64,000 nt of DNA, taken from sequence record LR756508.1. One strand, 5' to 3'. The notes below the pieces were generated by a model, which ran no database searches, was not told the DNA's origin, and worked only from the letters and a program-made list of their open reading frames with translations. A program made the position numbers and the translations under genes. Each line of letters starts with the position of its first letter. The stretch's first letter is position 1. This document shows, one piece after another, positions 7,889 to 30,886 of this stretch.

Positions 7889-8068
7889 ATGTTTGTTGAA
7901 GTTGTAAATTTCGAAGAAGTTGAAAATGGGGGGGCTGATTTAGAGGTCGAATGTGACAGAGAATTTATCGATTTAGCAAAAGATCACACCGAAAAAGAAA
8001 ACGATACGGATGCTGTTCGAGAGTTCATAGTTGAAAGTATTCTTCAAAAAGCTAATACAACTGAATGA
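7889..8068 (+). CDS. Small acidic hypothetical protein (59 aa)
   Basis: MFVEVVNFEEVENGGADLEVECDREF...; stop overlaps the next ATG (ATGA); below the ORF-track cutoff. Confidence 0.65.
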   Translation: MFVEVVNFEEVENGGADLEVECDREFIDLAKDHTEKENDTDAVREFIVESILQKANTTE

Positions 8069-8532
8069 GTTACGTTAGTCTTGAGTCTGAAGAAGTGTTT
8101 CCACATGATTTAGAGAACTCTGAAGTCGAAAAAGTTGAAAACACCGGAAAGACAAAAAATATTCCCGATTCATTTCAAGTTCCAGCGGACAAAGAGCAGC
8201 TTTTAAACATCCTGTTCATTCGGGTAAATCAAATAGTGCGCGATTTATTTGGATTGAAAGAAAGAATTGAGTCGCTTGAATCGAAGTCAGATGAAAACGG
8301 AAATTCAATATTTCAGCTCCGACAAGAGCTTGAAAGCGCTCAAAATATAGTTTTGGATGCGAAAACAAAAGAAGAGATCGAGGATAAAGTTCAAGATTTA
8401 GAAGCAAAGTCTTTTGAAGTCCGAAATGAACTTAAAAATGCAGAGGACAAGGTAAAAAACATAAAGCCCGATATAGAAAAAACAAAAGAGGCAATGTATA
8501 AGTTCTTTAAAGCGATAGGAAAAGGTCACTGA
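8065..8532 (+). CDS. Coiled-coil hypothetical protein
   Basis: Heptad-rich E/K/L sequence. Confidence 0.65.
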   Translation: MSYVSLESEEVFPHDLENSEVEKVENTGKTKNIPDSFQVPADKEQLLNILFIRVNQIVRDLFGLKERIESLESKSDENGNSIFQLRQELESAQNIVLDAKTKEEIEDKVQDLEAKSFEVRNELKNAEDKVKNIKPDIEKTKEAMYKFFKAIGKGH

Positions 8533-8566
8533 GGGTGATTCTAATATTGCCTAAATTGAGAAATAG

Positions 8567-8968
8567 ATGACAAGCAAAAAAGAACTTTCTGCTGAAAACG
8601 CGAAAGACCTAAAAAATAAGACTGATACGTTTACGCAGCAGGACAAAATTTCTTTGGATTTTTTATACCAAAGAATACGAGCTGCAGCGAGCCGAGGAGA
8701 CGCAATGATTACTATTAGCTCCAAAAACAAGACTGACGACAGCCAGAGCCACCGAAACACCACCGATAAAATTTTAGGAAGTGGAAACAGGATCGATAGA
8801 GATGTTTTCGAAAAACTGGAGGAACTTGACTTTCGAGTAAAGGAGTATGAACAGCCGCTTTCTAAAGGCCATTGGAAAACGCAAATTTCCTGGAGGGACA
8901 GCGACCTAGCGAAGTTTTCTTCTTTTGCTTTTGGGCTTCGGCACGGTGGCGGCTTTCCGATTGTTTAG
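8567..8968 (+). CDS. Hypothetical protein
   Basis: 133-aa ORF. Confidence 0.6.
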   Translation: MTSKKELSAENAKDLKNKTDTFTQQDKISLDFLYQRIRAAASRGDAMITISSKNKTDDSQSHRNTTDKILGSGNRIDRDVFEKLEELDFRVKEYEQPLSKGHWKTQISWRDSDLAKFSSFAFGLRHGGGFPIV

Positions 8969-9031
8969 ATGCTGGAAAGAAAATATCTTTGGAAACAAGT
9001 CTCGACTCAAGGTATTTAACAGAATTGGAAT

Positions 9032-9119
9032 AGAGAGAGATGCGAGATGGCTCTCGCTACTGACTTGAAATCAGTGGGAACCTGAAATATGGTTTGGGGA
9101 TCGAAACCTCCTCTCTCTG
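9032..9119 (+). tRNA. tRNA-Ser(TGA), non-canonical 8/4 cloverleaf with Sec-like D arm
   Basis: Acceptor AGAGAGAG/CTCTCTCT (8 bp), 6-bp D stem with TGGC loop, anticodon loop CT-TGA-AA, long V arm, 4-bp T stem with ATCGAAA loop, G73, no CCA. Confidence 0.85.
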
Positions 9120-9127
9120 CAACACAA

Positions 9128-9202
9128 GCGGGTGTAGATCAAGCGGCAGATCACTGGACTTCCATTCCAGAGGTTTTGTAGTTTCGACTACTACCACCCG
9201 CT
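9128..9202 (+). tRNA. tRNA-Gly(TCC)
   Basis: GCGGGTG/CACCCGC acceptor, loop CT-TCC-AT, TTCGACT T loop, U73, no CCA. Confidence 0.9.
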
Positions 9203-9208
9203 CTTTTA

Positions 9209-9264
9209 AGGCTGCTAACAGCAATTCTCCTTATCCTTTTTTTGGATAAAAGGAACGCAGCCTG
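9209..9264 (+). ncRNA. Armless tRNA-like element
   Basis: 7-bp stem AGGCTGC/GCAGCCT plus G, then TAACAGCAA, then a 6-bp stem TTATCC/GGATAA closing a 7-nt T7 loop; no D or T arm. Confidence 0.55.
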
Positions 9265-9287
9265 TTTTTAGTTTGATTAATAGTCTT

Positions 9288-9378
9288 GGAGGAGTGGCAG
9301 AGCTCGGTTTAATGCGTCTCACTGCTACTGAGATTGGCTTGAATCATAGTCACGCAGGTTCAAATCCTGCCTCCTCCG
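9288..9378 (+). tRNA. tRNA-Ser(GCT), canonical 7/5
   Basis: GGAGGAG/CTCCTCC acceptor, loop CT-GCT-AC, long V arm, GCAGG-TTCAAAT-CCTGC T arm, G73, no CCA. Confidence 0.92.
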
Positions 9379-9410
9379 CTTTTTCTGTCTAGAAAATAGT
9401 TACAATTTTT

Positions 9411-9713
9411 ATGAATGCGATAAGAAAAAAATTCTTGGACTTACGTAAGACCTGGATAAAAGAAACAGGTCACGTGGCTTCCCCCAAAGAGCGAGCAAAT
9501 CATCCTGCGTACCAGCAGATAATTGGAATGGGTCCGAAGGTGGTTCCCTTTTTGATTCGGGACCAAATTGAAAATAACACGCACTGGTTCTGGGCACTTC
9601 AATCCATCACAGGCGAGAACCCCATAGAGGAAAAACATGAAGGGTACGTTCAAAAAATGGCACAAGACTGGAATGAGTGGTGGGATGAGCAGTTGGCGCT
9701 GAGTGATTCTTAA
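9411..9713 (+). CDS. Conserved small helical hypothetical protein
   Basis: HPAYQQIIGMGPKVVPFL...HWFWALQSITGENP; GC-richer than the genome average. Confidence 0.7.
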   Translation: MNAIRKKFLDLRKTWIKETGHVASPKERANHPAYQQIIGMGPKVVPFLIRDQIENNTHWFWALQSITGENPIEEKHEGYVQKMAQDWNEWWDEQLALSDS

Positions 9714-9748
9714 GAAAGATAAAGTTTGAGGGTCTGCTCAACTATTAA

Positions 9749-10531
9749 GTGTATCTTTTAAAATGGTTTGAGAAAATAAATAAGATCTCGAATCTGATAA
9801 CCGAAGATGAGTATAAAACAAAGGATGGAAGAATTTTAAGTTTTAAGTTTGAAGAAAACGTAGAAAACACAGAAAGAAAAGGTTTTGTTATCCATAAACT
9901 TGACGCTTTTTTTGAGCCTCAATCAGAGGCTTTTTCTTCTGGTAAGCATGTTGGATATATTAAAGTAATTTACATACCCACTGAAAACGTTGACCAATAT
10001 TACCCAACAACGCTTCATTTTATCGATCTAGCAAAAGGATGGCAACTTTTAGACTATAAAAGTTTTTCCGAACCTGGAGAGTATCCAGGTCACGAAGAGT
10101 TTGCCAAAAAAGCTCATAATAGGGCAAGAAGTAACCCTTATAAGCGAGTTAAAGACTTTCCTGAATATAGTGAATATGAGAGTATAACTGATAAGAGATG
10201 GGAAGAACTTGCTAAATATTACAGAGATGAGATAAGAAAAACTTTCAAAGAAGACTTTGAAAGGTATTTAAACTATTACGTTGATAAACCTGTTGTTGAA
10301 TATATTAAAGTAAAAAAACAGTTCAGGAGGAACCGAGTGGGTTTTAATCTATATAAGAAAATGGCGAAAATTCTTGGAAATAAAGGAATGGTTCTTTATG
10401 CCAGTGGAACTCAAAGCGAGTATGCTGAGAAAGCCTGGAAAAAGCTTAGAGACGTTCTTCCAGTGAAAACCAAAAAGATTAAATTACCTTCGGGGGGCTC
10501 AGAAACGAGATATTTCATAGATTACCGATAA
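9749..10531 (+). CDS. Hypothetical protein with possible C-terminal GNAT-like fold
   Basis: VEYIKVKKQFRRNRVGFNLYKKM...ASGTQSEYAEKAW resembles GNAT motif A/B. Confidence 0.45.
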   Translation: MYLLKWFEKINKISNLITEDEYKTKDGRILSFKFEENVENTERKGFVIHKLDAFFEPQSEAFSSGKHVGYIKVIYIPTENVDQYYPTTLHFIDLAKGWQLLDYKSFSEPGEYPGHEEFAKKAHNRARSNPYKRVKDFPEYSEYESITDKRWEELAKYYRDEIRKTFKEDFERYLNYYVDKPVVEYIKVKKQFRRNRVGFNLYKKMAKILGNKGMVLYASGTQSEYAEKAWKKLRDVLPVKTKKIKLPSGGSETRYFIDYR

Positions 10532-10606
10532 ATATACTCTTTAACTTCAAATAAAAAAAAAACTGCATAATACTATGAAAATGAATTTTCATCTTGTGAG
10601 CAGTAG

Positions 10607-11038
10607 ATGAGAAACATCGCTGTAATTCTAATCTTTTCAATTCAATTATTAGGATTTACAGCGTTAGAGGGGGACAAAGAAGAAGCGTTTCCGAGATATT
10701 TTTATAAGGTAAATCCAAATCCAAAGATAACTGAAAACATAAATCACGAGGGCAAGGGGCATTTTTACGATCTTGTAAACATGAGCGGGGATACCTTAAA
10801 CGTATACGTCCAAGGAGTCGTCAAGGGCAGCGTCGAGCCTGACTATAAAAGAGCTTCTAAAGCCGATCTTGTAATATGGTGTTTTCCTCAAGAATATTCG
10901 CATCCAAGTCACGTCTTTCCTGAAGCACAAGGAAGAATCTTGATTCAGGAGAAAAATGGGGAAGTGGTAGTTGCAAGTGAATCATTTTTGAAGAGTAATG
11001 ACCTCTGGAACGGTCATAGCTATAAGATGTTAAATTAA
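10607..11038 (+). CDS. Hypothetical secreted protein
   Basis: N-terminal signal-peptide-like MRNIAVILIFSIQLLGFTA. Confidence 0.6.
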   Translation: MRNIAVILIFSIQLLGFTALEGDKEEAFPRYFYKVNPNPKITENINHEGKGHFYDLVNMSGDTLNVYVQGVVKGSVEPDYKRASKADLVIWCFPQEYSHPSHVFPEAQGRILIQEKNGEVVVASESFLKSNDLWNGHSYKMLN

Positions 11039-11072
11039 ATGCTAATCTCTTTGAACTGAAAGCATCTGCCCC

Positions 11073-12281
11073 ATGTCAACTTTTGAGGTCCCAATTAAGA
11101 AGGTTCAAATTAAAAATCATCCAAATGCTGATCGGCTTTCTATTGCAGAAATCCAAGGAACAGAATATCAATCTTTAGTTGGAATTGGAGAATACGAGTC
11201 GGGAGATCTTGTGGCTTATATTCCTGAAGATTCTATCGTTCCAGAGTGGATTCAAGAAAAGCTTGGAGTGAAAGGAAAGCTTGCAGGATCTGACAAAAAC
11301 CGAATTCGTAGTGTTCGTCTTAGGGGGGTATATTCGCAGGGGCTCTGCTTTCCTGTTGAGAATATAACCAACCATCCGGAGTTTGATGATGGATACTATA
11401 TTTTTCGTGAGAGTAGAGCGCTGGATGGAAGGCTCAGTGAGATCGATAAGAACTATAGCGTTGATCCGCTTTACAAAAAAGTGGAAGTTGGAGATGACGT
11501 TCAAGACTTTCTTGGAATTGAAAAGTATGAACCTCCTGTGCCCGTTCACATGAGCGGAGAAGTGTTTAACGCTCGGGGCAACACCTTGAAGTACGATATT
11601 GAGAACTTCCGAAAGTATCCTGATGTCCTTGAGGAAGGTGAGGAAGTTGTGGTAATGGAGAAGCTCCATGGCACCTTTTGCTGCATTGGTGTGGTTCCCC
11701 AAGACGAAGCTTCCAGTTCTTCGGGACGCCACATTGTTACATCTAAAGGTCTTTCAGCCAAAGGGCTGGCCTTGAAGCTAAATGAAAAGAATGAAGACAA
11801 TGTTTACATTCGTGCAGCCAGAAAATACAAGCTCTTAGAGAAGCTTTCGCAAAAAGAGGAAGGTTATTATTATATCCTCGGAGAAGTTTTTGGTCGAAAG
11901 ATTCAAGACCTTGAGTATGGAGCAGAAAGAGATGAGCTATTTTTCCGAGTCTTCGATATTTATAAAGGATCTCCAAAACGCGGGAGTGAAGGAAGATATC
12001 TCAACGACGATGAACTTGATGAAGAAATTAATAGGTTCGGTCTAAAAAGAGTTCCCGTTTTTTATCGGGGACCTTATTCAAAGGAAAACGTTTCAAGGTT
12101 TGTAAGCGGCCAGGAAACAGTTTCTGGGGAAGAAAATCACATGCGAGAGGGAGTTGTTGTTCGCCCTACAGAAGAGCGACATGTCGAAGAAAACCTTCCG
12201 ATGGGTGGTCGCGTTCAATTGAAGTGGAAGAGTGAAGAATACAAGCTCAGAAATGAAAAGACAGCTACAGAAAGACGTTAA
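11073..12281 (+). CDS. RNA ligase, DRB0094/Rnl2-related family with N-terminal tRNA-binding-like domain
   Basis: N-terminal HPNADRL...GDLVAYIPEDS; motifs EKLHG, GEVFG, FDIY, EGVV, LKWKS. Confidence 0.9.
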   Translation: MSTFEVPIKKVQIKNHPNADRLSIAEIQGTEYQSLVGIGEYESGDLVAYIPEDSIVPEWIQEKLGVKGKLAGSDKNRIRSVRLRGVYSQGLCFPVENITNHPEFDDGYYIFRESRALDGRLSEIDKNYSVDPLYKKVEVGDDVQDFLGIEKYEPPVPVHMSGEVFNARGNTLKYDIENFRKYPDVLEEGEEVVVMEKLHGTFCCIGVVPQDEASSSSGRHIVTSKGLSAKGLALKLNEKNEDNVYIRAARKYKLLEKLSQKEEGYYYILGEVFGRKIQDLEYGAERDELFFRVFDIYKGSPKRGSEGRYLNDDELDEEINRFGLKRVPVFYRGPYSKENVSRFVSGQETVSGEENHMREGVVVRPTEERHVEENLPMGGRVQLKWKSEEYKLRNEKTATERR

Positions 12282-12282
12282 T

Positions 12283-13685
12283 GAATGTTCAATTCATCCG
12301 GATGAATTGAACCACTACTATTTACAAGAAAGTATTATTATTCGAATTTTCTTTTAAATCACATGAAACTGACGAAAACGTTGAAGTTCAAACTTGAAGA
12401 CTTTTCAAGTCACGGAAGGTACGTCTTAAGCCAGACGCAGAGTCAGTTCCGAAAGTCCGTCAACTTTTATCTCCACCAAGTTGGACGCAAAGGCTCTACA
12501 AACGTAACCGACTACAAGAATGAGTATAAAAGAGCGAGAAACATATTTCAATTGAACTCAGCTTTGATTCAACAGTCGAAAAGGTTTGCGATAAACCAGT
12601 ACAAGTCTTACAAGAACAACGAAAGCAACGACAGTTTTCCACATTTCGAGTCGTTCGTTGACGTCCGTTACGATAACAGAACGATAACCTTCATCGATGA
12701 AAACGAAAAAACTCATGAGCTAAAAGTCACATTAGCCACAACCCAGAGCCGAGTCGAAGCCACGCTTCAAGGAGGAGAATATTGTTTCGAGGAGTTTCAA
12801 GCTGGCGAGTTTCAAGATGCCAGGCTCTATCGTCAAGATGGCGACTGGTATTTAAACGTTCATGTTCAAAGAGAGGCCGAAATTTCCAAAGCCAGAGATT
12901 CTGAGTTCTATATTGGTGTTGATCTTGGAGTCAACAACCTGGCAACAGTTGCAGTTCAAAACCGAAGGGGAGAAGTAATCGAGACAAAGTTTTTCGACGG
13001 GTCTTACGTGAGCGAAAAAAAGCGAAGGTTCAACGCCAAACGTCACGAATACATGCGGAAAGGTTTGTGGTCAAAGCTCAAAGAGACTCGCGGGAAGGAA
13101 AAGCGTTTCATCAAAGACGTCAACCACAAAATCTCAAAACACGTCAAAGATTTATGTGAGAAATACGAAAACTCAACTGTCGTATTAGAGAATCTTGACG
13201 GCATCCGTAACATCATAAATTACAACAGAAAACAGAATCGAAGATTGCACAACTGGAGCTTCAGTCAGCTCCAAGAGTTTATCATCTACAAAGCTCACGA
13301 AGCTGGAAGTTCTTATAGACGAGTTCCACCCTTCAACACTTCTCAAGTTTGTGGGAGTTGCTTCAACTCAATTTCCCGAAGCTCGGAGAACAGGGTTGTC
13401 GGAACTTGTGAAACCTGCAAGAAAGAGGTATTGAACGTGGATCTCAACGCAGCAGTTAATATTGTTCAACGTTTTTGGTATTACGTAATTCAGGACAACC
13501 TCGAAGACACTGTACCAGAAACTGAGCTACGTGAATTTAGCTCGGAGGGTTCGAAGCCTGAACTCCATCAAGGAAGCTTTGACGGCAAAGTCGACACCGC
13601 TGCGGTTGATTCAGAGAATCAACTCGTGTCGTCATTGAGCTTGAGCTTGCCTTGAAGCCCCCATCCTTGGACGGGAGTCATTCAC
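12283..13685 (+). mobile_element. tnpB-only IS200/IS605-family element 1
   Basis: TTAAT target 12278-12282, palindromic left end 12287-12312, right end GAAGCCCCCATCCTTGGACGGGAGTCATTCAC ending at 13685; no tnpA. Confidence 0.8.
12363..13655 (+). CDS. tnpB: RNA-guided endonuclease TnpB (Cas12f-like)
   Basis: RuvC I GVDLG, RuvC II VLENL, Zn finger CGSC/CETC, RuvC III NVDLNAA. Confidence 0.92.
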   Translation: MKLTKTLKFKLEDFSSHGRYVLSQTQSQFRKSVNFYLHQVGRKGSTNVTDYKNEYKRARNIFQLNSALIQQSKRFAINQYKSYKNNESNDSFPHFESFVDVRYDNRTITFIDENEKTHELKVTLATTQSRVEATLQGGEYCFEEFQAGEFQDARLYRQDGDWYLNVHVQREAEISKARDSEFYIGVDLGVNNLATVAVQNRRGEVIETKFFDGSYVSEKKRRFNAKRHEYMRKGLWSKLKETRGKEKRFIKDVNHKISKHVKDLCEKYENSTVVLENLDGIRNIINYNRKQNRRLHNWSFSQLQEFIIYKAHEAGSSYRRVPPFNTSQVCGSCFNSISRSSENRVVGTCETCKKEVLNVDLNAAVNIVQRFWYYVIQDNLEDTVPETELREFSSEGSKPELHQGSFDGKVDTAAVDSENQLVSSLSLSLP

Positions 13686-13734
13686 TTTATAAGCTTTTGG
13701 ATAAAGAAAAAAGTGATTTTTTTTAATCATCCTC

Positions 13735-13742
13735 TATTTATA
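13735..13742 (+). promoter_or_regulatory. Candidate phage promoter core TATTTATA
   Basis: TAYTTA motif recurring in intergenic gaps upstream of starts; this copy precedes the ORF-rnpB-tRNA unit. Confidence 0.4.
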
Positions 13743-13795
13743 GAACTTCTCATTGATTTTTACGAGATGGATAAGTTATACCATCAAAAAGTGAA

Positions 13796-14014
13796 ATGAA
13801 TAAAAACTTTTTCGAGGATCGAGACATGTCGGTTGTTGGTGAGAATGAGTTTAGGCGTATTAACGTTTTCCAACAGGAAGTAAAAGGTGTGGTCGTATTC
13901 GAAAGAAAGTTTTGGAAGATTTGGAAGGTCGATCAAACACTAACTTGGGGCCAGTTTGATGTGAGCAGTTATTTTTTGAACCTTATCGGACAATTTTACT
14001 TCAAACTCAAATAA
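13796..14014 (+). CDS. Hypothetical protein
   Basis: 72-aa ORF whose stop overlaps the start of the RNase P RNA. Confidence 0.55.
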   Translation: MNKNFFEDRDMSVVGENEFRRINVFQQEVKGVVVFERKFWKIWKVDQTLTWGQFDVSSYFLNLIGQFYFKLK

Positions 14015-14228
14015 GGTCTATTCCGTCGCTCTACGGCTCAAAAAGAAGGTTGTAGAGAGGAAGCTCTAGATACCACCGCTCGCTGCGGGAGAGTCTGTTG
14101 ACTCGCTCCTAACCGCTTCACTGGTACAATCCCAAACAGTCCAGAGGTGTGAGCGGCCAGAGTTCTGGACGGGTAGGGTGCGCCGAGATAAATGATGGAT
14201 TGACACAGAATCTAGGCTATTAGACCTT
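14013..14228 (+). ncRNA. rnpB: Minimal RNase P RNA (~216 nt)
   Basis: P1 AAGGTCTA/TAGACCTT, P2 TCCGTC/GATGGA, P3 CTCTAC/GTAGAG, P4 AGC(T)CTAGA/TCTAGGCT with bulged U, CR-I GAGGAAG, CR-IV AGATAAATGA, CR-V ACAGAA. Confidence 0.88.
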
Positions 14229-14236
14229 TTAAAGAA

Positions 14237-14324
14237 AGAGGGTAAACTAGTGTTTGGCCTGCTAGGACAGACTCGAAATCTGTGCGTACCAAACTGGTAT
14301 GTGGTTCAAATCCACTGCCCTCTG
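14237..14324 (+). tRNA. tRNA-Ser(CGA), 8/4 cloverleaf
   Basis: Acceptor AGAGGGTA/TGCCCTCT (8 bp), T stem GTGG/CCAC (4 bp) with TTCAAAT loop, loop CT-CGA-AA, long V arm, G73, no CCA. Confidence 0.88.
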
Positions 14325-14419
14325 CTAAAAAAGTTGGTTCTAAAACCAAAAAAATAACAGTTTCTGTTATTTAAAGAATGGTAAACTGGTAGAATCGATA
14401 TGCATTTTTCAATATAAAA

Positions 14420-15245
14420 TTGAGTAGCTATAATTGTTAAATGTAAGTGTGGGAAAACGTTTAAGAATAAAGCAGGGTTGGGCAGCCATCAAAATTGGTG
14501 TGATGGAACAGGGTTGAGTTCAAATAAAAGTAAAAACAAAAAAGAGAAGAAGAAAGAGAAAATTGAAACTGAAAAATTATGTAACTATGGTTGCGGAGAA
14601 AAAGCCAAATGGAGTATGAAGAATGGAAATTTGTCCTGTTCCAAATATTCAGCTCAGTGTGAAGCTTTAAAAGAAAAGAACAGTAAAGGTTTAAAAGCTG
14701 CTTGGAAAGAAAATCCTTGAAGCAGTGGAGGTGATACTGGAGGCGGGTGGAATAAAGGAAAAACTTATGAGGAAGTCTACGGGGAAGATAGAGCCGAAAA
14801 AGTTAAAGACAAAATTTCTAATACACTTAAAAATAATGAAGAAAACTCATGGGATAAATTAAGTCCAAAGGAGAGGAAAAAAGCAGAAAAGAAACTGAGT
14901 GAGAATACAGGTGGTTATAGAAAAAAAGGTGGTAGAGGAAATGGATACTGGTACGAATCTGAAGTAAATGGGGAGATATGGCTTGATAGTAGTTATGAAT
15001 TAGCTTATGCTAAGTGGTTAGATAAAAACTTTGATAACTGGAAGAGAAACACATCCAAATTTGAATACTCTTTTAAAAATAAAAAGAAAAATTATATTCC
15101 CGATTTTTATATACCGAATAAAGAGGTTTATATTGAAATAAAAGGATATAAAACGGAACAAGATGAAGCTAAATGGAGGGATTTTCCGAAACAGTTAGAG
15201 GTTCTATACAAAGAGGACTTAATTGAAATCGGATGTGATTTATAG
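14420..15245 (+). pseudogene. Disrupted PD-(D/E)XK homing-type endonuclease (zinc finger + NUMOD3-like + nuclease)
   Basis: One frame runs 14424-15245 (KCKCGKTF..GLGSHQNWC; WNKGKTYEEVYG; DSSYE...YIPDFY...IEIKG) with an in-frame TGA at 14718-14720 and no canonical in-frame start before the zinc finger. Confidence 0.75.
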
Positions 15246-15332
15246 AGGGTAAAGCGGACAGGCGTGCCGCCGCTGCTTGGAAAGCAGTTGGCACCTGGAA
15301 CATGGTGTGGAATTCGAGTTTCCTGCCCTCTG
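15244..15332 (+). tRNA. tRNA-Ser(GGA), 8/4 cloverleaf
   Basis: Acceptor AGAGGGTA/TGCCCTCT (8 bp), T stem GGAA/TTCC (4 bp) with TTCGAGT loop, loop TT-GGA-AA, long V arm, G73, no CCA. Confidence 0.88.
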
Positions 15333-15455
15333 CTATCTAATAGCAGGTATATTTGATGTCATCTTAATCTTTTTGTCTTCACATTAAAGATAAGTTTAGT
15401 CCACAAGGTTTTAAGAAAAGATATAGTGAAAATAGATCCATAAAAATGAAAAAAA

Positions 15456-15659
15456 TTGAAGCAGAAAATAATAAAGTCATTTCAAAATCCCGAGGTTGAC
15501 AAATATTTTAATGCTTTTGAAACCAATTCTGTTGTCCTAAAGAACGACGGAATTTACCGTGTTGAAGACATAGAGTACAAAAAAAAAAGACCGACTCGGT
15601 TATACTTATACTTGAAAAAGACCCATTCTATATTTCTATGTAAAATTCTAAGTCACTAA
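15456..15659 (+). CDS. Hypothetical protein
   Basis: 67-aa ORF, TTG start. Confidence 0.45.
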   Translation: MKQKIIKSFQNPEVDKYFNAFETNSVVLKNDGIYRVEDIEYKKKRPTRLYLYLKKTHSIFLCKILSH

Positions 15660-15679
15660 TATTTTAAAGAAGAGATATA

Positions 15680-17926
15680 ATGAGCCGAACATATATTCCA
15701 GAGGAAGATCAGCGTGTAGCCGACAAGTCTGCTCTTAAAGATCTTTATCCAACGGCAGAAAGAACAGTATACCTTGATTCAGAAGATAACACTTACTTCT
15801 GGGATACAAGCGGCGATGCCTCTAACGCCAACGGAGACACGATTCTAAGTTCAAATGAGCCTGGGTTTCAAGACGGAGATGCTAACGAAGGTGTTTGGAG
15901 ACTTTCTCCTACCGATTTTTCTAGAAAAACCACTGATGATTTAGCTGAAGGTTCAAATCAGTATTACACTGACACCCGAGCAAGAAACGCCCTCTCGGCG
16001 ACTGGTGACATTTCCTACGATTCAAACACCGGTGAATTCAGCGTAACTTCTTACAGTTCAAGTGACTTTGATTCAGATTTCTCAAATCGAACTACCGACG
16101 ATCTTGTTGAGGGTTCTTCTCAATTATACTTCACTGAAGAACGTGTTGACGACCGTGTAGATAATTTACTTACTCCTGGTCTTCACGTAGCATCTACCTA
16201 TAACGACGCTTCTGATTCAATTATCTTGGACGTCGATGATAACTTAAGTAGTTACTCGAACGACGTCGGGTTTATTTCAGATTTAAGTGGATTTACAACC
16301 GATGACTTGGCAGAAGGAGCCAACAACCTGTATTACACAGACGATAAAGTAAAAAATGAGTTTGAAGCTTATGGTGACCTTACTTATGATATAGATCCTG
16401 TTACTGGCGGCTTTGACATGTCGAAAGCCAGCTATTCAAACACAAGTTTTGGCGTAGGATCTGAAGATTCAATTCCACGTGGAATTGCACTCAACAGCGA
16501 CGGAACGAAAATGTTCATTATTGGGGAAAATGGAGATAATGTTCATGAATATAGTATGAGCATTGGATTTGATCTATCTACAGCGACCTACTCTGGAACA
16601 AGTTTTAATATAAGTCAAGATGTCGAGCCAACGGGAATAGCGTTTAATGGTGGTGGAACGAAAATGTTCATTTCTGGATCGGCTAATGATAACATTTATG
16701 AGTATGGGTTGAATACTGGTTTTGATTTATCTACGGCAAGCTTTACTACAAGCTTCGACGTAAGCAATGAGCTTTTTGATCCGAGGGATATCGAGTTTAA
16801 TAATGATGGAACGAAAATGTTTGTTCCTGATGATGGAGTTTCCGACAGCATTCACGAGTATGATTTGAGTACGGCCTTTGATGTATCAACTGCGAGCTGG
16901 AATAGAAGCTTAGATACGAGTTCCGAAGACTTTGAAAGAAAAGACGTCGCGTTCAATAGTGATGGAACAAAGATGTTCGTCGTTGGAAGCTCTAACCAGA
17001 ATATTTATGAGTATAACTTGAGTACTGGTTTCGACCTATCAACAGCCAGCTATTCAGGAACAAATTTTGATATAGGGTCTGAAGACAGCGTGATGACGGG
17101 AATCGCGTTCAATAGCGATGGTACTACAATGCTTCTCGTTGGTGGGAATAACGCTGATGTCCATCAATACGAAGTTGGCGATACCAGCGACAAAGGTCGC
17201 TTCTCTATTGATGTTTCTGAGATTAGCGATCTTCTTTCAAGCTCTACTACCGACGATCTGGCGGAAGGGGGTTCAAATCTTTACTTTACAGATGAAAGAG
17301 TTGATGACCGAGTTAACAGTCTGCTTACCGGGGGAAATGGAGTTACCCTTTCCTACGACGACGCAAATAATACATTGTCAATAGCGGCAAGTGACCTCAC
17401 CACCGAAGAAGTTCAAGATGATGCCTGGGCCGTTCTTAGTGGAACGCAGAGCTTAATTAACGTTACATATGACGATGCAAATGATGAAGTTGATTTTGTA
17501 GTAGAGCCTAGTTTGAGTAACTACACAAATGACGCTGGATTTCTTACCGATATAAATGGGTTTACTTCCGACGACCTCACTGAGGGGTCTTATAACCTTT
17601 ACTACACTGATAGCAGGGTAGACAGTCGAGTTGATAATGTTCTTCCAACTGGTCAAGATTCATTTAGTGGAGATGGGAATCAAGAGCAGTTTCAGATTTC
17701 GCATGGACTTGGAGCAAAACCGAATACATGGCTTATAAGCTCTGCCTCTGACGACGCCAGTGGAATTTCGCATACCACTGCCGACGACACCACTCTTTAC
17801 GTAAATTACGACTCGGCACCTCCTTCTGGCACTGGGAACGTTGTGATTAATTGGATGGCAGTTGGACTTGGAACGAATGTCGCACCTCTTTGGGAAGACC
17901 AGGGAGATGTGGAGTATGAGAAGTAG
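15680..17926 (+). CDS. Virion fibre/adhesin-like protein with beta-propeller insert
   Basis: Five T(T/S)DDLxEGxxxLY(Y/F)T-type repeats flanking five GIAFNxDGTKMF...YxLSTxFDxSTA blades; very acidic; small beta-sandwich C-terminus. Confidence 0.75.
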   Translation: MSRTYIPEEDQRVADKSALKDLYPTAERTVYLDSEDNTYFWDTSGDASNANGDTILSSNEPGFQDGDANEGVWRLSPTDFSRKTTDDLAEGSNQYYTDTRARNALSATGDISYDSNTGEFSVTSYSSSDFDSDFSNRTTDDLVEGSSQLYFTEERVDDRVDNLLTPGLHVASTYNDASDSIILDVDDNLSSYSNDVGFISDLSGFTTDDLAEGANNLYYTDDKVKNEFEAYGDLTYDIDPVTGGFDMSKASYSNTSFGVGSEDSIPRGIALNSDGTKMFIIGENGDNVHEYSMSIGFDLSTATYSGTSFNISQDVEPTGIAFNGGGTKMFISGSANDNIYEYGLNTGFDLSTASFTTSFDVSNELFDPRDIEFNNDGTKMFVPDDGVSDSIHEYDLSTAFDVSTASWNRSLDTSSEDFERKDVAFNSDGTKMFVVGSSNQNIYEYNLSTGFDLSTASYSGTNFDIGSEDSVMTGIAFNSDGTTMLLVGGNNADVHQYEVGDTSDKGRFSIDVSEISDLLSSSTTDDLAEGGSNLYFTDERVDDRVNSLLTGGNGVTLSYDDANNTLSIAASDLTTEEVQDDAWAVLSGTQSLINVTYDDANDEVDFVVEPSLSNYTNDAGFLTDINGFTSDDLTEGSYNLYYTDSRVDSRVDNVLPTGQDSFSGDGNQEQFQISHGLGAKPNTWLISSASDDASGISHTTADDTTLYVNYDSAPPSGTGNVVINWMAVGLGTNVAPLWEDQGDVEYEK

Positions 17927-18234: not shown

Positions 18235-19628
18235 ATTGAATCAGTTGATATTTAGAAACACATGAGAGTCAGAACCTTAGGTTCCAAATGCAAGTAACCA
18301 GAACTTTGAAATTCAAAATTCAAGATCCAAACGAGAGCAAAAAGTCGAGCTTAAACGAGACGGTTCGGCAGTATCGGAAATGCGTCAATTTCTACTTGCA
18401 TGAGATCGGACGAAAGCAGTCGACAACCAAGTCCGACTATCAGGATCAATACCAGAAAGCCAAAAGCCAGTACAACTTGCCAACGGCTTTAATCCAGCAA
18501 GCTAGAGATTTTGCTTTTGAGCAGCATAAGAGCTACAAAAACAACGATAAAAACAAAACATTCCCACATTTTAACAGTTTCACGCCAATCGACTACGACC
18601 AGAGAACTTTGAGCTTGAAGCCGAAAGACGGACATTTTTGGCTTTGGGCGAGTTTATCGACCACGAGAGGAAGAGCGAGAGTTCCAATTGAAGGTGGCGA
18701 AAAGCACTACGAGATGCTAAAACAAAAAGACTTTGATGTAAAAAGCGCAAAGCTAAGATACAAGCCTGAGACCGACGAGTATTATTTGGACGTTCACGTC
18801 AAAAAGAACGTTGAAATCCAAGACGCCGAAAGTTCAAAATATTATATCGGAGTTGACGTTGGGATCAACAATCTTGCTACAATTGTTGTCCAAAACCGAG
18901 GAGGAGAAGTACTTGAAACTAAGTTTTTCGATGGAAGCTACGTAAGCGAGAAACGCCGACACTACCGAAAGAAACGAAAAGAGTATATGTTGAAGGGCTT
19001 ATGGTCGAAGCTACGCAAGTCGAAAGGCAAGGAAAGGCGTTTCATGAAAGACGTCAACCACAAGATTTCAAAATACATCAAAGACTTATGCGAGAAGTAC
19101 GAGAGTTCAACGGTCGTGATGGAGAAGCTTGACGAAATTCGAGATCATATGAACTTCAATAAAAAGCAGAACAGAAGACTACACAACTGGAATTTCGCAC
19201 AACTACAACAGTTCATCGAGTACAAAGCCCATATCATGGGGACGAGTATTCGAAGAGTTCCGCCTTTTAAGACATCCCAAGTTTGCAGGAACTGTTTTAA
19301 CTTTCTAAGTCGAAGTTCGAAAAATGCAGTTAATGCAGTTTGCAAAACCTGCAAGAAGGGTGTCGTCAATGCGGACTTGAACGCAGCAGTCAATATTGTA
19401 AGACGTTTGTGGTATTACATAAGCGAGAATTCTGACATCGATATCACCGTACCGCAAATCGAGTCGCGTGAATTCGGCTCGGAGGACTCTAGATTAGAGT
19501 CCCATCAAGGAGGCGTCAAAAGCGAAGGCGACACCGCTGCAGTTGAAACTCCACATGAGCTTCAACTTGTGCCGCAATTGAGCTAAAGCCTGCCTTGAAG
19601 CCTCCGTCCTTGGACGGGGGTCATTCAC
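18196..19628 (+). mobile_element. tnpB-only IS200/IS605-family element 2
   Basis: TTAAT at 18191-18195, left end GTTCAAGAAAA-CCTGCGGC-TTTA-GCCGCAAG-ATGAATTGAA, right end GAAGCCTCCGTCCTTGGACGGGGGTCATTCAC. Confidence 0.85.
18288..19586 (+). CDS. tnpB: RNA-guided endonuclease TnpB, paralogue of 12363-13655
   Basis: GVDVG, VMEKL, CRNC/CKTC, NADLNAA. Confidence 0.92.
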   Translation: MQVTRTLKFKIQDPNESKKSSLNETVRQYRKCVNFYLHEIGRKQSTTKSDYQDQYQKAKSQYNLPTALIQQARDFAFEQHKSYKNNDKNKTFPHFNSFTPIDYDQRTLSLKPKDGHFWLWASLSTTRGRARVPIEGGEKHYEMLKQKDFDVKSAKLRYKPETDEYYLDVHVKKNVEIQDAESSKYYIGVDVGINNLATIVVQNRGGEVLETKFFDGSYVSEKRRHYRKKRKEYMLKGLWSKLRKSKGKERRFMKDVNHKISKYIKDLCEKYESSTVVMEKLDEIRDHMNFNKKQNRRLHNWNFAQLQQFIEYKAHIMGTSIRRVPPFKTSQVCRNCFNFLSRSSKNAVNAVCKTCKKGVVNADLNAAVNIVRRLWYYISENSDIDITVPQIESREFGSEDSRLESHQGGVKSEGDTAAVETPHELQLVPQLS

Positions 19629-30433: not shown

Positions 30434-30877
30434 GGGACTGATACGGCTTCGACATCTTGTATGGAGTTGGAGCCACTACCTGGCGCAACATATGAGCGCC
30501 GTAAAGAAATTGAATATGAATCTATAACTGGCGTAAACAACGCTGATTACGAGTCTGCTGGATTTACGGCAGAGGACTTCGCACAGATGGACGGCGAAAG
30601 CCTCTATCATGGTAGCGAGCGTAAGCCTGCTGCTGTGTAAGTGAAGTTTTGGACTTGATTTAAAAGTCCACTCCATCGTTCCCCAACGCAGATAAGGATC
30701 GAACGGTGTCATATTTATCTGCTTGAGTAGACTGGCTGGCATCTGCCATTCTGCCGACATTTGAAGATGCCTGCTCCGTTTTGTGAATTTTGGGAGCTAA
30801 AACTAAATTCACTATGGTAGTGAACAATGGCAATAGCAAAGACAAGATGGACTCGGGTTCGACTCCCGACAGTTCCA
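30434..30877 (+). ncRNA. ssrA: tmRNA
   Basis: GGGACTG/CAGTTCC acceptor with G3-U70, A discriminator, 5' GATACGGCTTCGAC, P2 ATCTTGT/ACAAGAT, T arm TCGGG-TTCGACT-CCCGA; tag frame 30530-30640. Confidence 0.93.
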
Positions 30878-30886
30878 GATTCCAGG

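Follow-up and report, generated by a model that had tools for sequence, protein, structure and literature searches.

[quoted passage not shown] The bacterial type A RNase P RNA (M1 RNA/rnpB; Rfam RF00010) combines a catalytic domain, consisting of P1–P2–P3, a pseudoknotted P4 with a bulged U, P5, a P6 pseudoknot to L17, and P15–P16–P17 with the L15 GGU that binds the tRNA CCA end, with a specificity domain (S-domain) of roughly 150 nt that comprises P7–P14 with CR-II and CR-III, and its length is given as roughly 350–400 nt in the first-pass annotation of the locus described here and as about 400 nt in PMC5066622. Several reduced forms have been described. The archaeal type T RNase P RNA of Thermoproteaceae (Pyrobaculum) keeps the catalytic domain, has lost most of the specificity domain and is missed by the standard covariance model (PMC3579882, PMC7191817); it has an archaeal core, a 3-bp P2, a 2-nt P5/P15 linker and retained P7–P9, and it works with archaeal Rpp proteins. 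The RNase P RNAs of CPR/Patescibacteria are divergent, fall below the Rfam threshold and lack P12–P14, P18 or P15 in some genomes, but they are the only rnpB of the cell and keep an S-domain (PMC8172020). Engineered C-domain-only RNAs of Escherichia coli (CP RPR and its P18-deleted forms) are catalytic without the S-domain, with and without the protein, although removal of the S-domain lowers their activity; their efficiency depends on a P6-type pairing, and P18 adds nothing once the S-domain is gone (PMC5839562). A literature check for viral RNase P RNAs, which had been named in advance as a test, found no report of a phage RNase P RNA in the open-access papers and bioRxiv preprints searched, so that an earlier report elsewhere cannot be excluded; a 2024 RNase P review mentions none, and two jumbo-phage reviews, one dated June 2026, do not mention RNase P at all. 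The only viral case found is the RNase P-like RNA of camelpox virus, a eukaryotic virus, which shows only loose secondary-structure similarity, was inactive in vitro and was discussed as a possible decoy (PMC3001073).

A 216-nt element was examined in a 64,000-nt stretch (hereafter the window) of the unannotated 484-kb uncultured phage genome LR756508.1, in which window positions 13990–14340 correspond to record positions 75990–76340. The first-pass annotation, made from the sequence alone, had read this element as a phage-encoded minimal RNase P RNA with a complete catalytic core and a nearly absent specificity domain, which probably uses host RnpA to mature the phage tRNAs, with a tRNA starting 9 nt downstream. 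The observation was confirmed, as each listed helix and motif was found at its given position (Table 1), including the 8-bp P4 with its bulged U. The default Rfam scan of the window reports no RNase P. However, when positions 13900–14400 (501 nt) were searched with E-value reporting, RNaseP_bact_a (RF00010) was the best-scoring Rfam model and aligned over its whole length (model positions 1–367) at 49 bits (E 3.5e-14), which is half of the gathering score of 100 bits; the absence of a covariance-model hit had been set out beforehand as a condition that would refute the reading. The alignment keeps P1, P2, P3, CR-I, both strands of P4, P5, J5/15, P15–P17 with the CGGGUA loop, CR-IV and CR-V, whereas about 110 model positions of the specificity domain and the 24-nt P18 are deleted. 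Read by eye against the bacterial consensus, 5 of the 8 P4 pairs differ on both sides and still pair. A plain MFE fold is not significant (z-score −1.78), but such a fold cannot model the P4 and P6 pseudoknots and was therefore not used as a test. The two alternative P5/P7/P15 registers left by the first-pass annotation were settled by comparison with homologues.

Table 1. Features of the mini RNase P RNA locus in the window of LR756508.1 (pairing percentages refer to the aligned family).
Feature	Position (strand)	Description	Support
Whole mini RNase P RNA	14013–14228 (+)	P1 5' strand to P1 3' strand, 216 nt	RF00010 full-model hit at 14010–14235; nhmmer family profile hit at 14013–14229; profile built without the window, hit at 14017–14227
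P1 5' strand	14013–14020 (+)	Pairs with 14221–14228, 8 bp	Family P1 74% paired; all 7 family P1 pairs tested show changes on both sides
P2 5' strand	14022–14027 (+)	Pairs with 14194–14199, 6 bp, one G-U	Family P2 90–96% paired, covaries
P3 hairpin	14029–14057 (+)	About 9 bp (14029–14037/14049–14057), loop about 14038–14048; longer than the 3-bp plus tetraloop P3 of most relatives	Family P3 96% paired
CR-I and P4 5' strand	14057–14070 (+)	CR-I GAGGAA (14057–14062); P4 5' strand AGC-[U14065]-CUAGA (14062–14064, 14066–14070) with bulged U14065	RF00010 alignment; family P4 98.5% paired (selection criterion)
P5 5' strand	14071–14075 (+)	Pairs with 14122–14126	Family P5 94% paired; 4/4 pairs covary
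P6 5' strand	14076–14081 (+)	CCGCUC; 6-bp pseudoknot with 14151–14156 (GAGCGG) in the P17 loop	Family P6 82.5% paired; 4/4 pairs covary
Remnant in place of the specificity domain	14082–14121 (+)	P7-like stem 14085–14088/14113–14116 enclosing hairpin 14091–14095/14100–14104 and an asymmetric internal loop; about 40 nt	Both stems covary; P7-like stem 93.5% and inner hairpin 90.5% paired; family remnant 35–59 nt (median 40)
J5/15, P15, P16, P17 and L15	14127–14185 (+)	J5/15 CAAU; P15 14131–14133/14176–14178; P16 14139–14144/14165–14170; P17 14146–14147/14157–14158; L15 GGU 14172–14174; no P18, only 7 nt (14179–14185) before CR-IV	Family P15 92.5%, P16 87.4%, P17 91.2% paired; GGU kept in 57/58 and J5/15 AA in 56–58/58 members
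CR-IV and P2 3' strand	14186–14199 (+)	CR-IV AGAUAAAUG (14186–14194) running into the P2 3' strand (14194–14199)	RF00010 alignment
CR-V and P4 3' strand	14205–14218 (+)	CR-V ACAGAA (14205–14210); P4 3' strand UCUAGGCU (14211–14218)	RF00010 alignment
P1 3' strand	14221–14228 (+)
tRNA-Ser(cga)	14237–14325 (+)	Starts 9 nt after P1; +1 lies 18 nt after the end of P4	ARAGORN

BLAST of the element against GenBank phages found only itself, and a scan of IMG/VR with an exact 14-mer (GAGGAAGCTCTAGA) returned only chance matches, none of which had the 3' half. A gapped pattern (GAGGAA-NN-T, 105–135 nt, AGATRAATG, 4–34 nt, ACAGAA) matched at least 120 loci in IMG/VR. When the 8 nt around the bulged T were scored against the 8 nt after ACAGAA, the distribution over about 122 matches was bimodal, with 59 matches at 8/8, 6 at 7/8 and most of the rest at 1–5, whereas chance would give 8/8 about 0.04% of the time. 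The P4 sequences differ widely, for example AGTCGCGA/TCGCGGCT, AACACGGA/TCCGTGTT and AAGCCCGA/TCGGGCTT. An nhmmer profile found about 14 more members in the same loci, which were searched by sequence profile only and not with a structure-aware model, giving at least about 70 homologues of 185–245 nt (median 194). The window contains exactly one copy according to this profile, and a profile built from 57 homologues without the window also finds only this site in the 64 kb (61 bits, E 2e-18).

Fifty-eight distinct sequences were aligned with MAFFT, so that the alignment was not fitted to any structure (mean column identity 37%). RNAalifold recovered P3, P4, P5, the P7-like stem with its inner hairpin, P15, P16 and P17, and 30 of its 34 pairs have compensatory changes. 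The full catalytic-domain model (P1–P6 and P15–P17), with P4 and P6 as pseudoknots, was then written out and its pairs were counted. In this model, 89.7% of cells are paired, against 33–43% when partners are slid by 1–3 columns, and 45 of 49 pairs show changes on both sides. The covariation score is 0.711, against 0.08–0.14 for slid partners and 0.20 for shuffles, and none of 500 shuffles reached the observed score. Compensatory changes in P4 among homologues, whose absence would have counted against the reading by the criteria laid down beforehand, were found, as they were in every other helix; P4 pairing was, however, a selection criterion and does not count as independent evidence, while none of the other helices was selected on. 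The invariance of GAGGAA, AGAURAAUG and ACAGAA in the IMG/VR set was likewise imposed by the search and filter. In contrast, several residues that the pattern did not demand are almost invariant, namely the L15 GGU, the J5/15 adenines, the CGC at the P2/P3 junction, and a GGAG...U-N3-A motif in the hairpin that replaces the S-domain.

Compared with bacterial type A RNase P RNA, the element shares the catalytic-domain topology and the CR-I, CR-IV (AGAUxAAUG) and CR-V sequences, but it lacks three defining properties of that family, as P8–P14 with CR-II and CR-III are absent, P18 is absent, and the score lies below the Rfam gathering score. P18 is absent in most members, although a P18-like insert exists in some relatives, namely the family members labelled L143, L160, L201 and L211 and the phage LR756501. 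The resemblance to type T, which the first-pass annotation had invoked, is an analogy only and is limited to the loss of the S-domain. The P2 (6 bp), the J5/15 linker (4 nt here; 3–4 nt in the phage RNA) and the core sequence are bacterial, and a single bulged hairpin stands in place of P7–P9; the two look like convergent minimization and not the same family. Compared with the CPR RNAs, the phage family is far smaller in length and nearly absent from cellular genomes. The design is the same as that of the engineered C-domain RNAs, but the phage RNAs are natural and under selection, and they keep a conserved 35–59-nt hairpin module that the constructs lack. In contrast to the camelpox RNA, the phage RNA is a clear sequence and structure homologue of the bacterial ribozyme.

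In 51 of 71 loci, the RNA lies among same-strand tRNA genes, with up to 32 tRNAs in 8 kb, whereas 20 of 71 loci have no tRNA at all. In 25 of 71 loci, a tRNA starts within 60 nt downstream, mostly at 4–9 nt, and in 14 a tRNA ends just upstream. The distance from the end of P4 to +1 of the next tRNA is 15–23 nt in 22 of 72 elements, a spacing shared by the window. Among 520 tRNAs in these loci, 71% have U at −1 and 73% have G at +1, which is the canonical bacterial RNase P substrate signature, although the tRNA-Ser adjacent to the window element has A at both −1 and +1. No conserved neighboring protein gene was found across the family, as only homing-endonuclease-like and tRNA-related ORFs and a few other small families recur, and none is shared by more than 10 of 82 loci.

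The same pattern applied to 596 Gb of genomes from 185,579 species gave 76 matches, of which only 13 are real. Most of these are on short MAG contigs full of tRNAs; one is in an isolate, Achromobacter anxifer LMG 26857, next to 32 tRNAs; and one is on a 425,361-bp contig binned as an archaeon, which has the same length and the same profile score as an IMG/VR viral contig and is very likely a huge phage. No match was found in a plasmid collection. Of the 58 strict IMG/VR members, 23 are on contigs of 100 kb or more, against about 6 of 48 chance-hit loci from the same scan. A family consensus, which was needed to reach relatives in GenBank phages, found the RNA in the huge phages LR756501/03 (735 kb), LR756502 (642 kb) and LR756511 (595 kb), and in cultured Microbacterium phages. 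In phage Zooman (OK040793.1, 89341–89555), it exactly fills an unannotated 215-nt gap between tRNA-Arg(ccg) and tRNA-Arg(cct) and scores 53 bits against RF00010, and Big4, A3Wally and a fourth phage also carry it. These BLAST-found members were not forced to match the pattern and do vary (UAGGAAG, AGACAAAUG, ACAGGA); the family is therefore wider than the pattern. Rfam-based annotation would miss the family, since of 12 members tested, 7 get no RNase P hit at E <= 1e-3 and 5 score 26–49 bits against any RNase P model.

With respect to the protein partner, the window has no RnpA "RNR" motif and no plausible small basic gene, and tblastn with E. coli C5, Bacillus subtilis RnpA and a phage RnpA returned no hit in the whole LR756508.1 record, although such a search can miss divergent homologues. 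These observations leave undecided whether the RNA of this phage works with an RnpA protein. On the other hand, an ORF at 525186–525488 of LR756502.1, carrying KRAVDRNRVKRLMRE, matches Pfam Ribonuclease_P (PF00825) at 53.1 bits against a cut-off of 22.3; it sits among phage-type ORFs and lies about 90 kb from the mini RNase P RNA of that phage. At least one phage thus encodes both subunits, which supports reading the RNA as a working RNase P RNA that uses an RnpA-type protein. A 52%-identical ORF is present in LR745206.1, and two more relatives are in IMG/VR, whose loci carry no mini RNA within 10 kb. Most RnpA hits in GenBank phage records appear to be host contamination and were not counted.

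Based on these results, the interpretation given by the first-pass annotation is supported, in that each of its refutation tests that could be run came out in its favor, and the finding points beyond one gene to a widespread, unannotated class of phage-encoded minimal RNase P RNAs. It is considered likely, with fairly good confidence, that 14013–14228 is the gene for a phage-encoded RNase P RNA of the bacterial type A lineage, reduced to the catalytic domain plus a roughly 40-nt bulged hairpin, and most likely transcribed together with the downstream tRNA-Ser, although no recognizable sigma-70 promoter or terminator was found flanking the gene. In the proposed mechanism, the RNA folds through the P1/P4/P5 and P2/P3 helices, braced by the P6 pseudoknot, and may bind an RnpA-type protein, which in this phage would be that of the host. 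It could then cleave the 5' leaders of the phage pre-tRNAs, and possibly of the phage pre-tmRNA, by means of the conserved P4/CR-I/CR-IV/CR-V active site and the L15 GGU that pairs with the tRNA 3'-CCA. Cleavage at the 5' end of the adjacent tRNA would also define the 3' end of the ribozyme, which would be released from the same transcripts by tRNA-processing cuts. The homology, the fold, the conservation, the genomic context and the distribution rest on the analysis, whereas expression, catalysis, the folding pathway and the identity of a protein partner, if any, are inferred, as neither transcripts nor pre-tRNA cleavage were assayed. The position in tRNA arrays is only indirect support for the removal of pre-tRNA 5' leaders. 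The published biochemistry fits this design, because the phage family retains the P4 core, P6 and L15 and has lost the S-domain and P18 (PMC5839562). The conserved 40-nt hairpin may brace the fold or touch the tRNA, which was not examined. The benefit to the phage would be a tRNA-processing capacity that does not depend on host rnpB expression during infection.

Other explanations appear less likely. A non-catalytic decoy that soaks up host RnpA or pre-tRNAs, and so disturbs host tRNA maturation, would be consistent with the camelpox precedent, the missing S-domain that helps to position tRNA, and the failure to detect an RnpA in this phage. However, a decoy would not need the active-site elements, yet the P4 bulged U, the CR-I adenines, CR-IV and CR-V are kept, as are the unselected L15 GGU and J5/15 adenines, and the position inside the phage's own tRNA arrays and a phage carrying both subunits point to use rather than sabotage; this reading is unlikely. 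Similarly unlikely is a dedicated or cis-acting ribozyme that acts mainly on the tRNA tethered to its own 3' end, or on non-tRNA targets allowed by the loss of the S-domain. The tight spacing to the next tRNA, with the P1 3' end only 4–9 nt from the cleavage site, makes a cis reaction look geometrically conceivable, but the geometry was not modeled, only about a third of members have a tRNA directly downstream, short spacers are typical of tRNA arrays in any case, and the conservation of L15 GGU fits ordinary recognition of a tRNA 3' end.

A decaying fragment of a captured host rnpB could be suggested by the length, about half that of bacterial rnpB, and by the sub-threshold Rfam score. This pseudogene reading is very improbable and effectively refuted by the covariation result, since the same deletion architecture, with closed P1 and compensated helices, recurs in more than 70 divergent sequences and is kept across unrelated phage genomes of 190–735 kb. 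An unrelated structured RNA, for example the guide (omega) RNA of the TnpB-like gene that ends at 13655, 358 nt upstream, is also rejected, because a 72-aa ORF separates the two, family members occur without a conserved TnpB-like neighbor, and the RNA matches RNase P over the full model and covaries accordingly.

A broader reading, which is possible but tentative, is that phages of many lineages carry their own RNase P, a ribozyme of about 190–220 nt that would be the smallest natural bacterial-type RNase P, in which the conserved 40-nt hairpin replaces the whole specificity domain. The hairpin has an invariant A and a U spaced as in a T-loop and might act as a minimal tRNA-elbow ruler. Some huge phages would pair the RNA with their own RnpA, making tRNA 5' maturation independent of the host and perhaps resistant to host shut-off or to defenses that act on tRNA supply; no description of this was found in the literature searched. 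RNase P RNA is treated as a cellular housekeeping ribozyme, and a widespread phage-encoded form would add tRNA 5' maturation to the functions that large phages carry, alongside tRNAs, tmRNA and synthetases, and would be a clear case of a virus encoding a trans-acting ribozyme of the translation apparatus. The family also shows which parts of bacterial RNase P are dispensable (S-domain, P18, long P3) and which are not (P4 core, P6, L15), in agreement with earlier engineering work. At about 190 nt, it would suit structural study and RNase-P-based tools, and a dedicated covariance model is needed for its annotation. Cultured, non-pathogenic host-phage pairs exist for Zooman, Big4 and A3Wally with Microbacterium foliorum NRRL B-24224.

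As for the surroundings of the element, all long ORFs of the window run on the + strand and include an RNA ligase, two TnpB-like genes, a structural protein and a baseplate wedge subunit, in agreement with the phage origin of the genome. ARAGORN finds four tRNAs and a tmRNA in the window, and tmRNA genes are also located near the RNA in two other loci of the family.

The window also encodes a tmRNA, which was recovered with the Rfam model RF00023 at 72 bits and for which ARAGORN gave the tag peptide GRRKPLSW*. tmRNA genes also lie close to the mini RNase P RNA in two other loci of the family (L202 and L166), and tmRNA is itself an RNase P substrate. A small tRNA cluster lies 4.6 kb upstream of the RNase P RNA, and, together with tRNA-Ser(cga), three of the four tRNAs in the window are serine tRNAs. 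An RNA ligase gene is located about 2 kb upstream of the element, and an RtcB-like ligase lies about 2 kb from the corresponding element of phage Zooman. In addition, a Thg1-like ORF, which was assigned by reading the sequence and was not compared with Pfam, recurs in four family loci. Genes for tRNA repair may travel with these arrays. The block holding the RNase P RNA, tRNA-Ser, and a structural gene is bracketed by two TnpB/IS605 OrfB-like ORFs (phrog_506), the guide RNAs and element ends of which were not sought. Furthermore, two ORFs in the same frame are separated by a single TGA, which could reflect a pseudogene, read-through, or local recoding, whereas elsewhere the genes look intact under code 11.

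Coordinates of additional features in the window and in other loci
Sequence	Position	Strand	Feature
Window	9032-9379	+	tRNA cluster: Ser(tga), Gly(tcc), and Ser(gct)
Window; locus L314	11073-12281; 4684-5101	+ (window)	RNA ligase gene (window); possible tRNA repair gene (L314)
Window	12363-13655 and 18288-19586	+	TnpB/IS605 OrfB-like ORFs
Window	14478-14862 (14478-14720 and 14725-14862)	+	Two in-frame ORFs separated by TGA
Window	30434-30880	+	tmRNA
LR756502.1 (locus L315)	525186-525488 (L315 2998-3303)		RnpA ORF
NZ_CAHLAR010000005.1 (locus L294)	8001-16000		Achromobacter anxifer LMG 26857 locus with a family member

A 642-kb phage that carries the mini RNase P RNA, LR756502.1, also encodes an RnpA protein, which matches Pfam PF00825 at 53 bits and possesses the RNR motif. 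The two together would make a complete phage RNase P. An ORF with 52% identity is present in LR745206.1, and two relatives are found in IMG/VR (loci L319 and L320). In contrast, several GenBank records labelled as phages, including MG065691.1, MG065686.1, and OR850986.1, contain RnpA genes that are 97-99% identical to the E. coli/Salmonella protein, and these look like host DNA contamination rather than phage genes.

Among the records assigned to cellular organisms, a contig of 425,361 bp deposited in a "Candidatus Pacearchaeota" MAG (JBBACR010000001.1, locus L300) has the same length and the same profile hit as an IMG/VR viral contig (3300035208_004923, locus L204), and is probably a huge phage binned as an archaeon. 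On the other hand, the cultured isolate Achromobacter anxifer LMG 26857 carries a family member inside an array of 32 tRNA genes in 8 kb; whether this is a prophage or another mobile element was not determined. Finally, some family members (loci L143, L160, L201, and L211, and L317 from LR756501.1) possess an extra P18-like insert before CR-IV, which consists of two short hairpins with GNRA-type loops, for example GCC-GAAA-GGC and CACC-GCAA-GGUG, and which the RNA of the window lacks.
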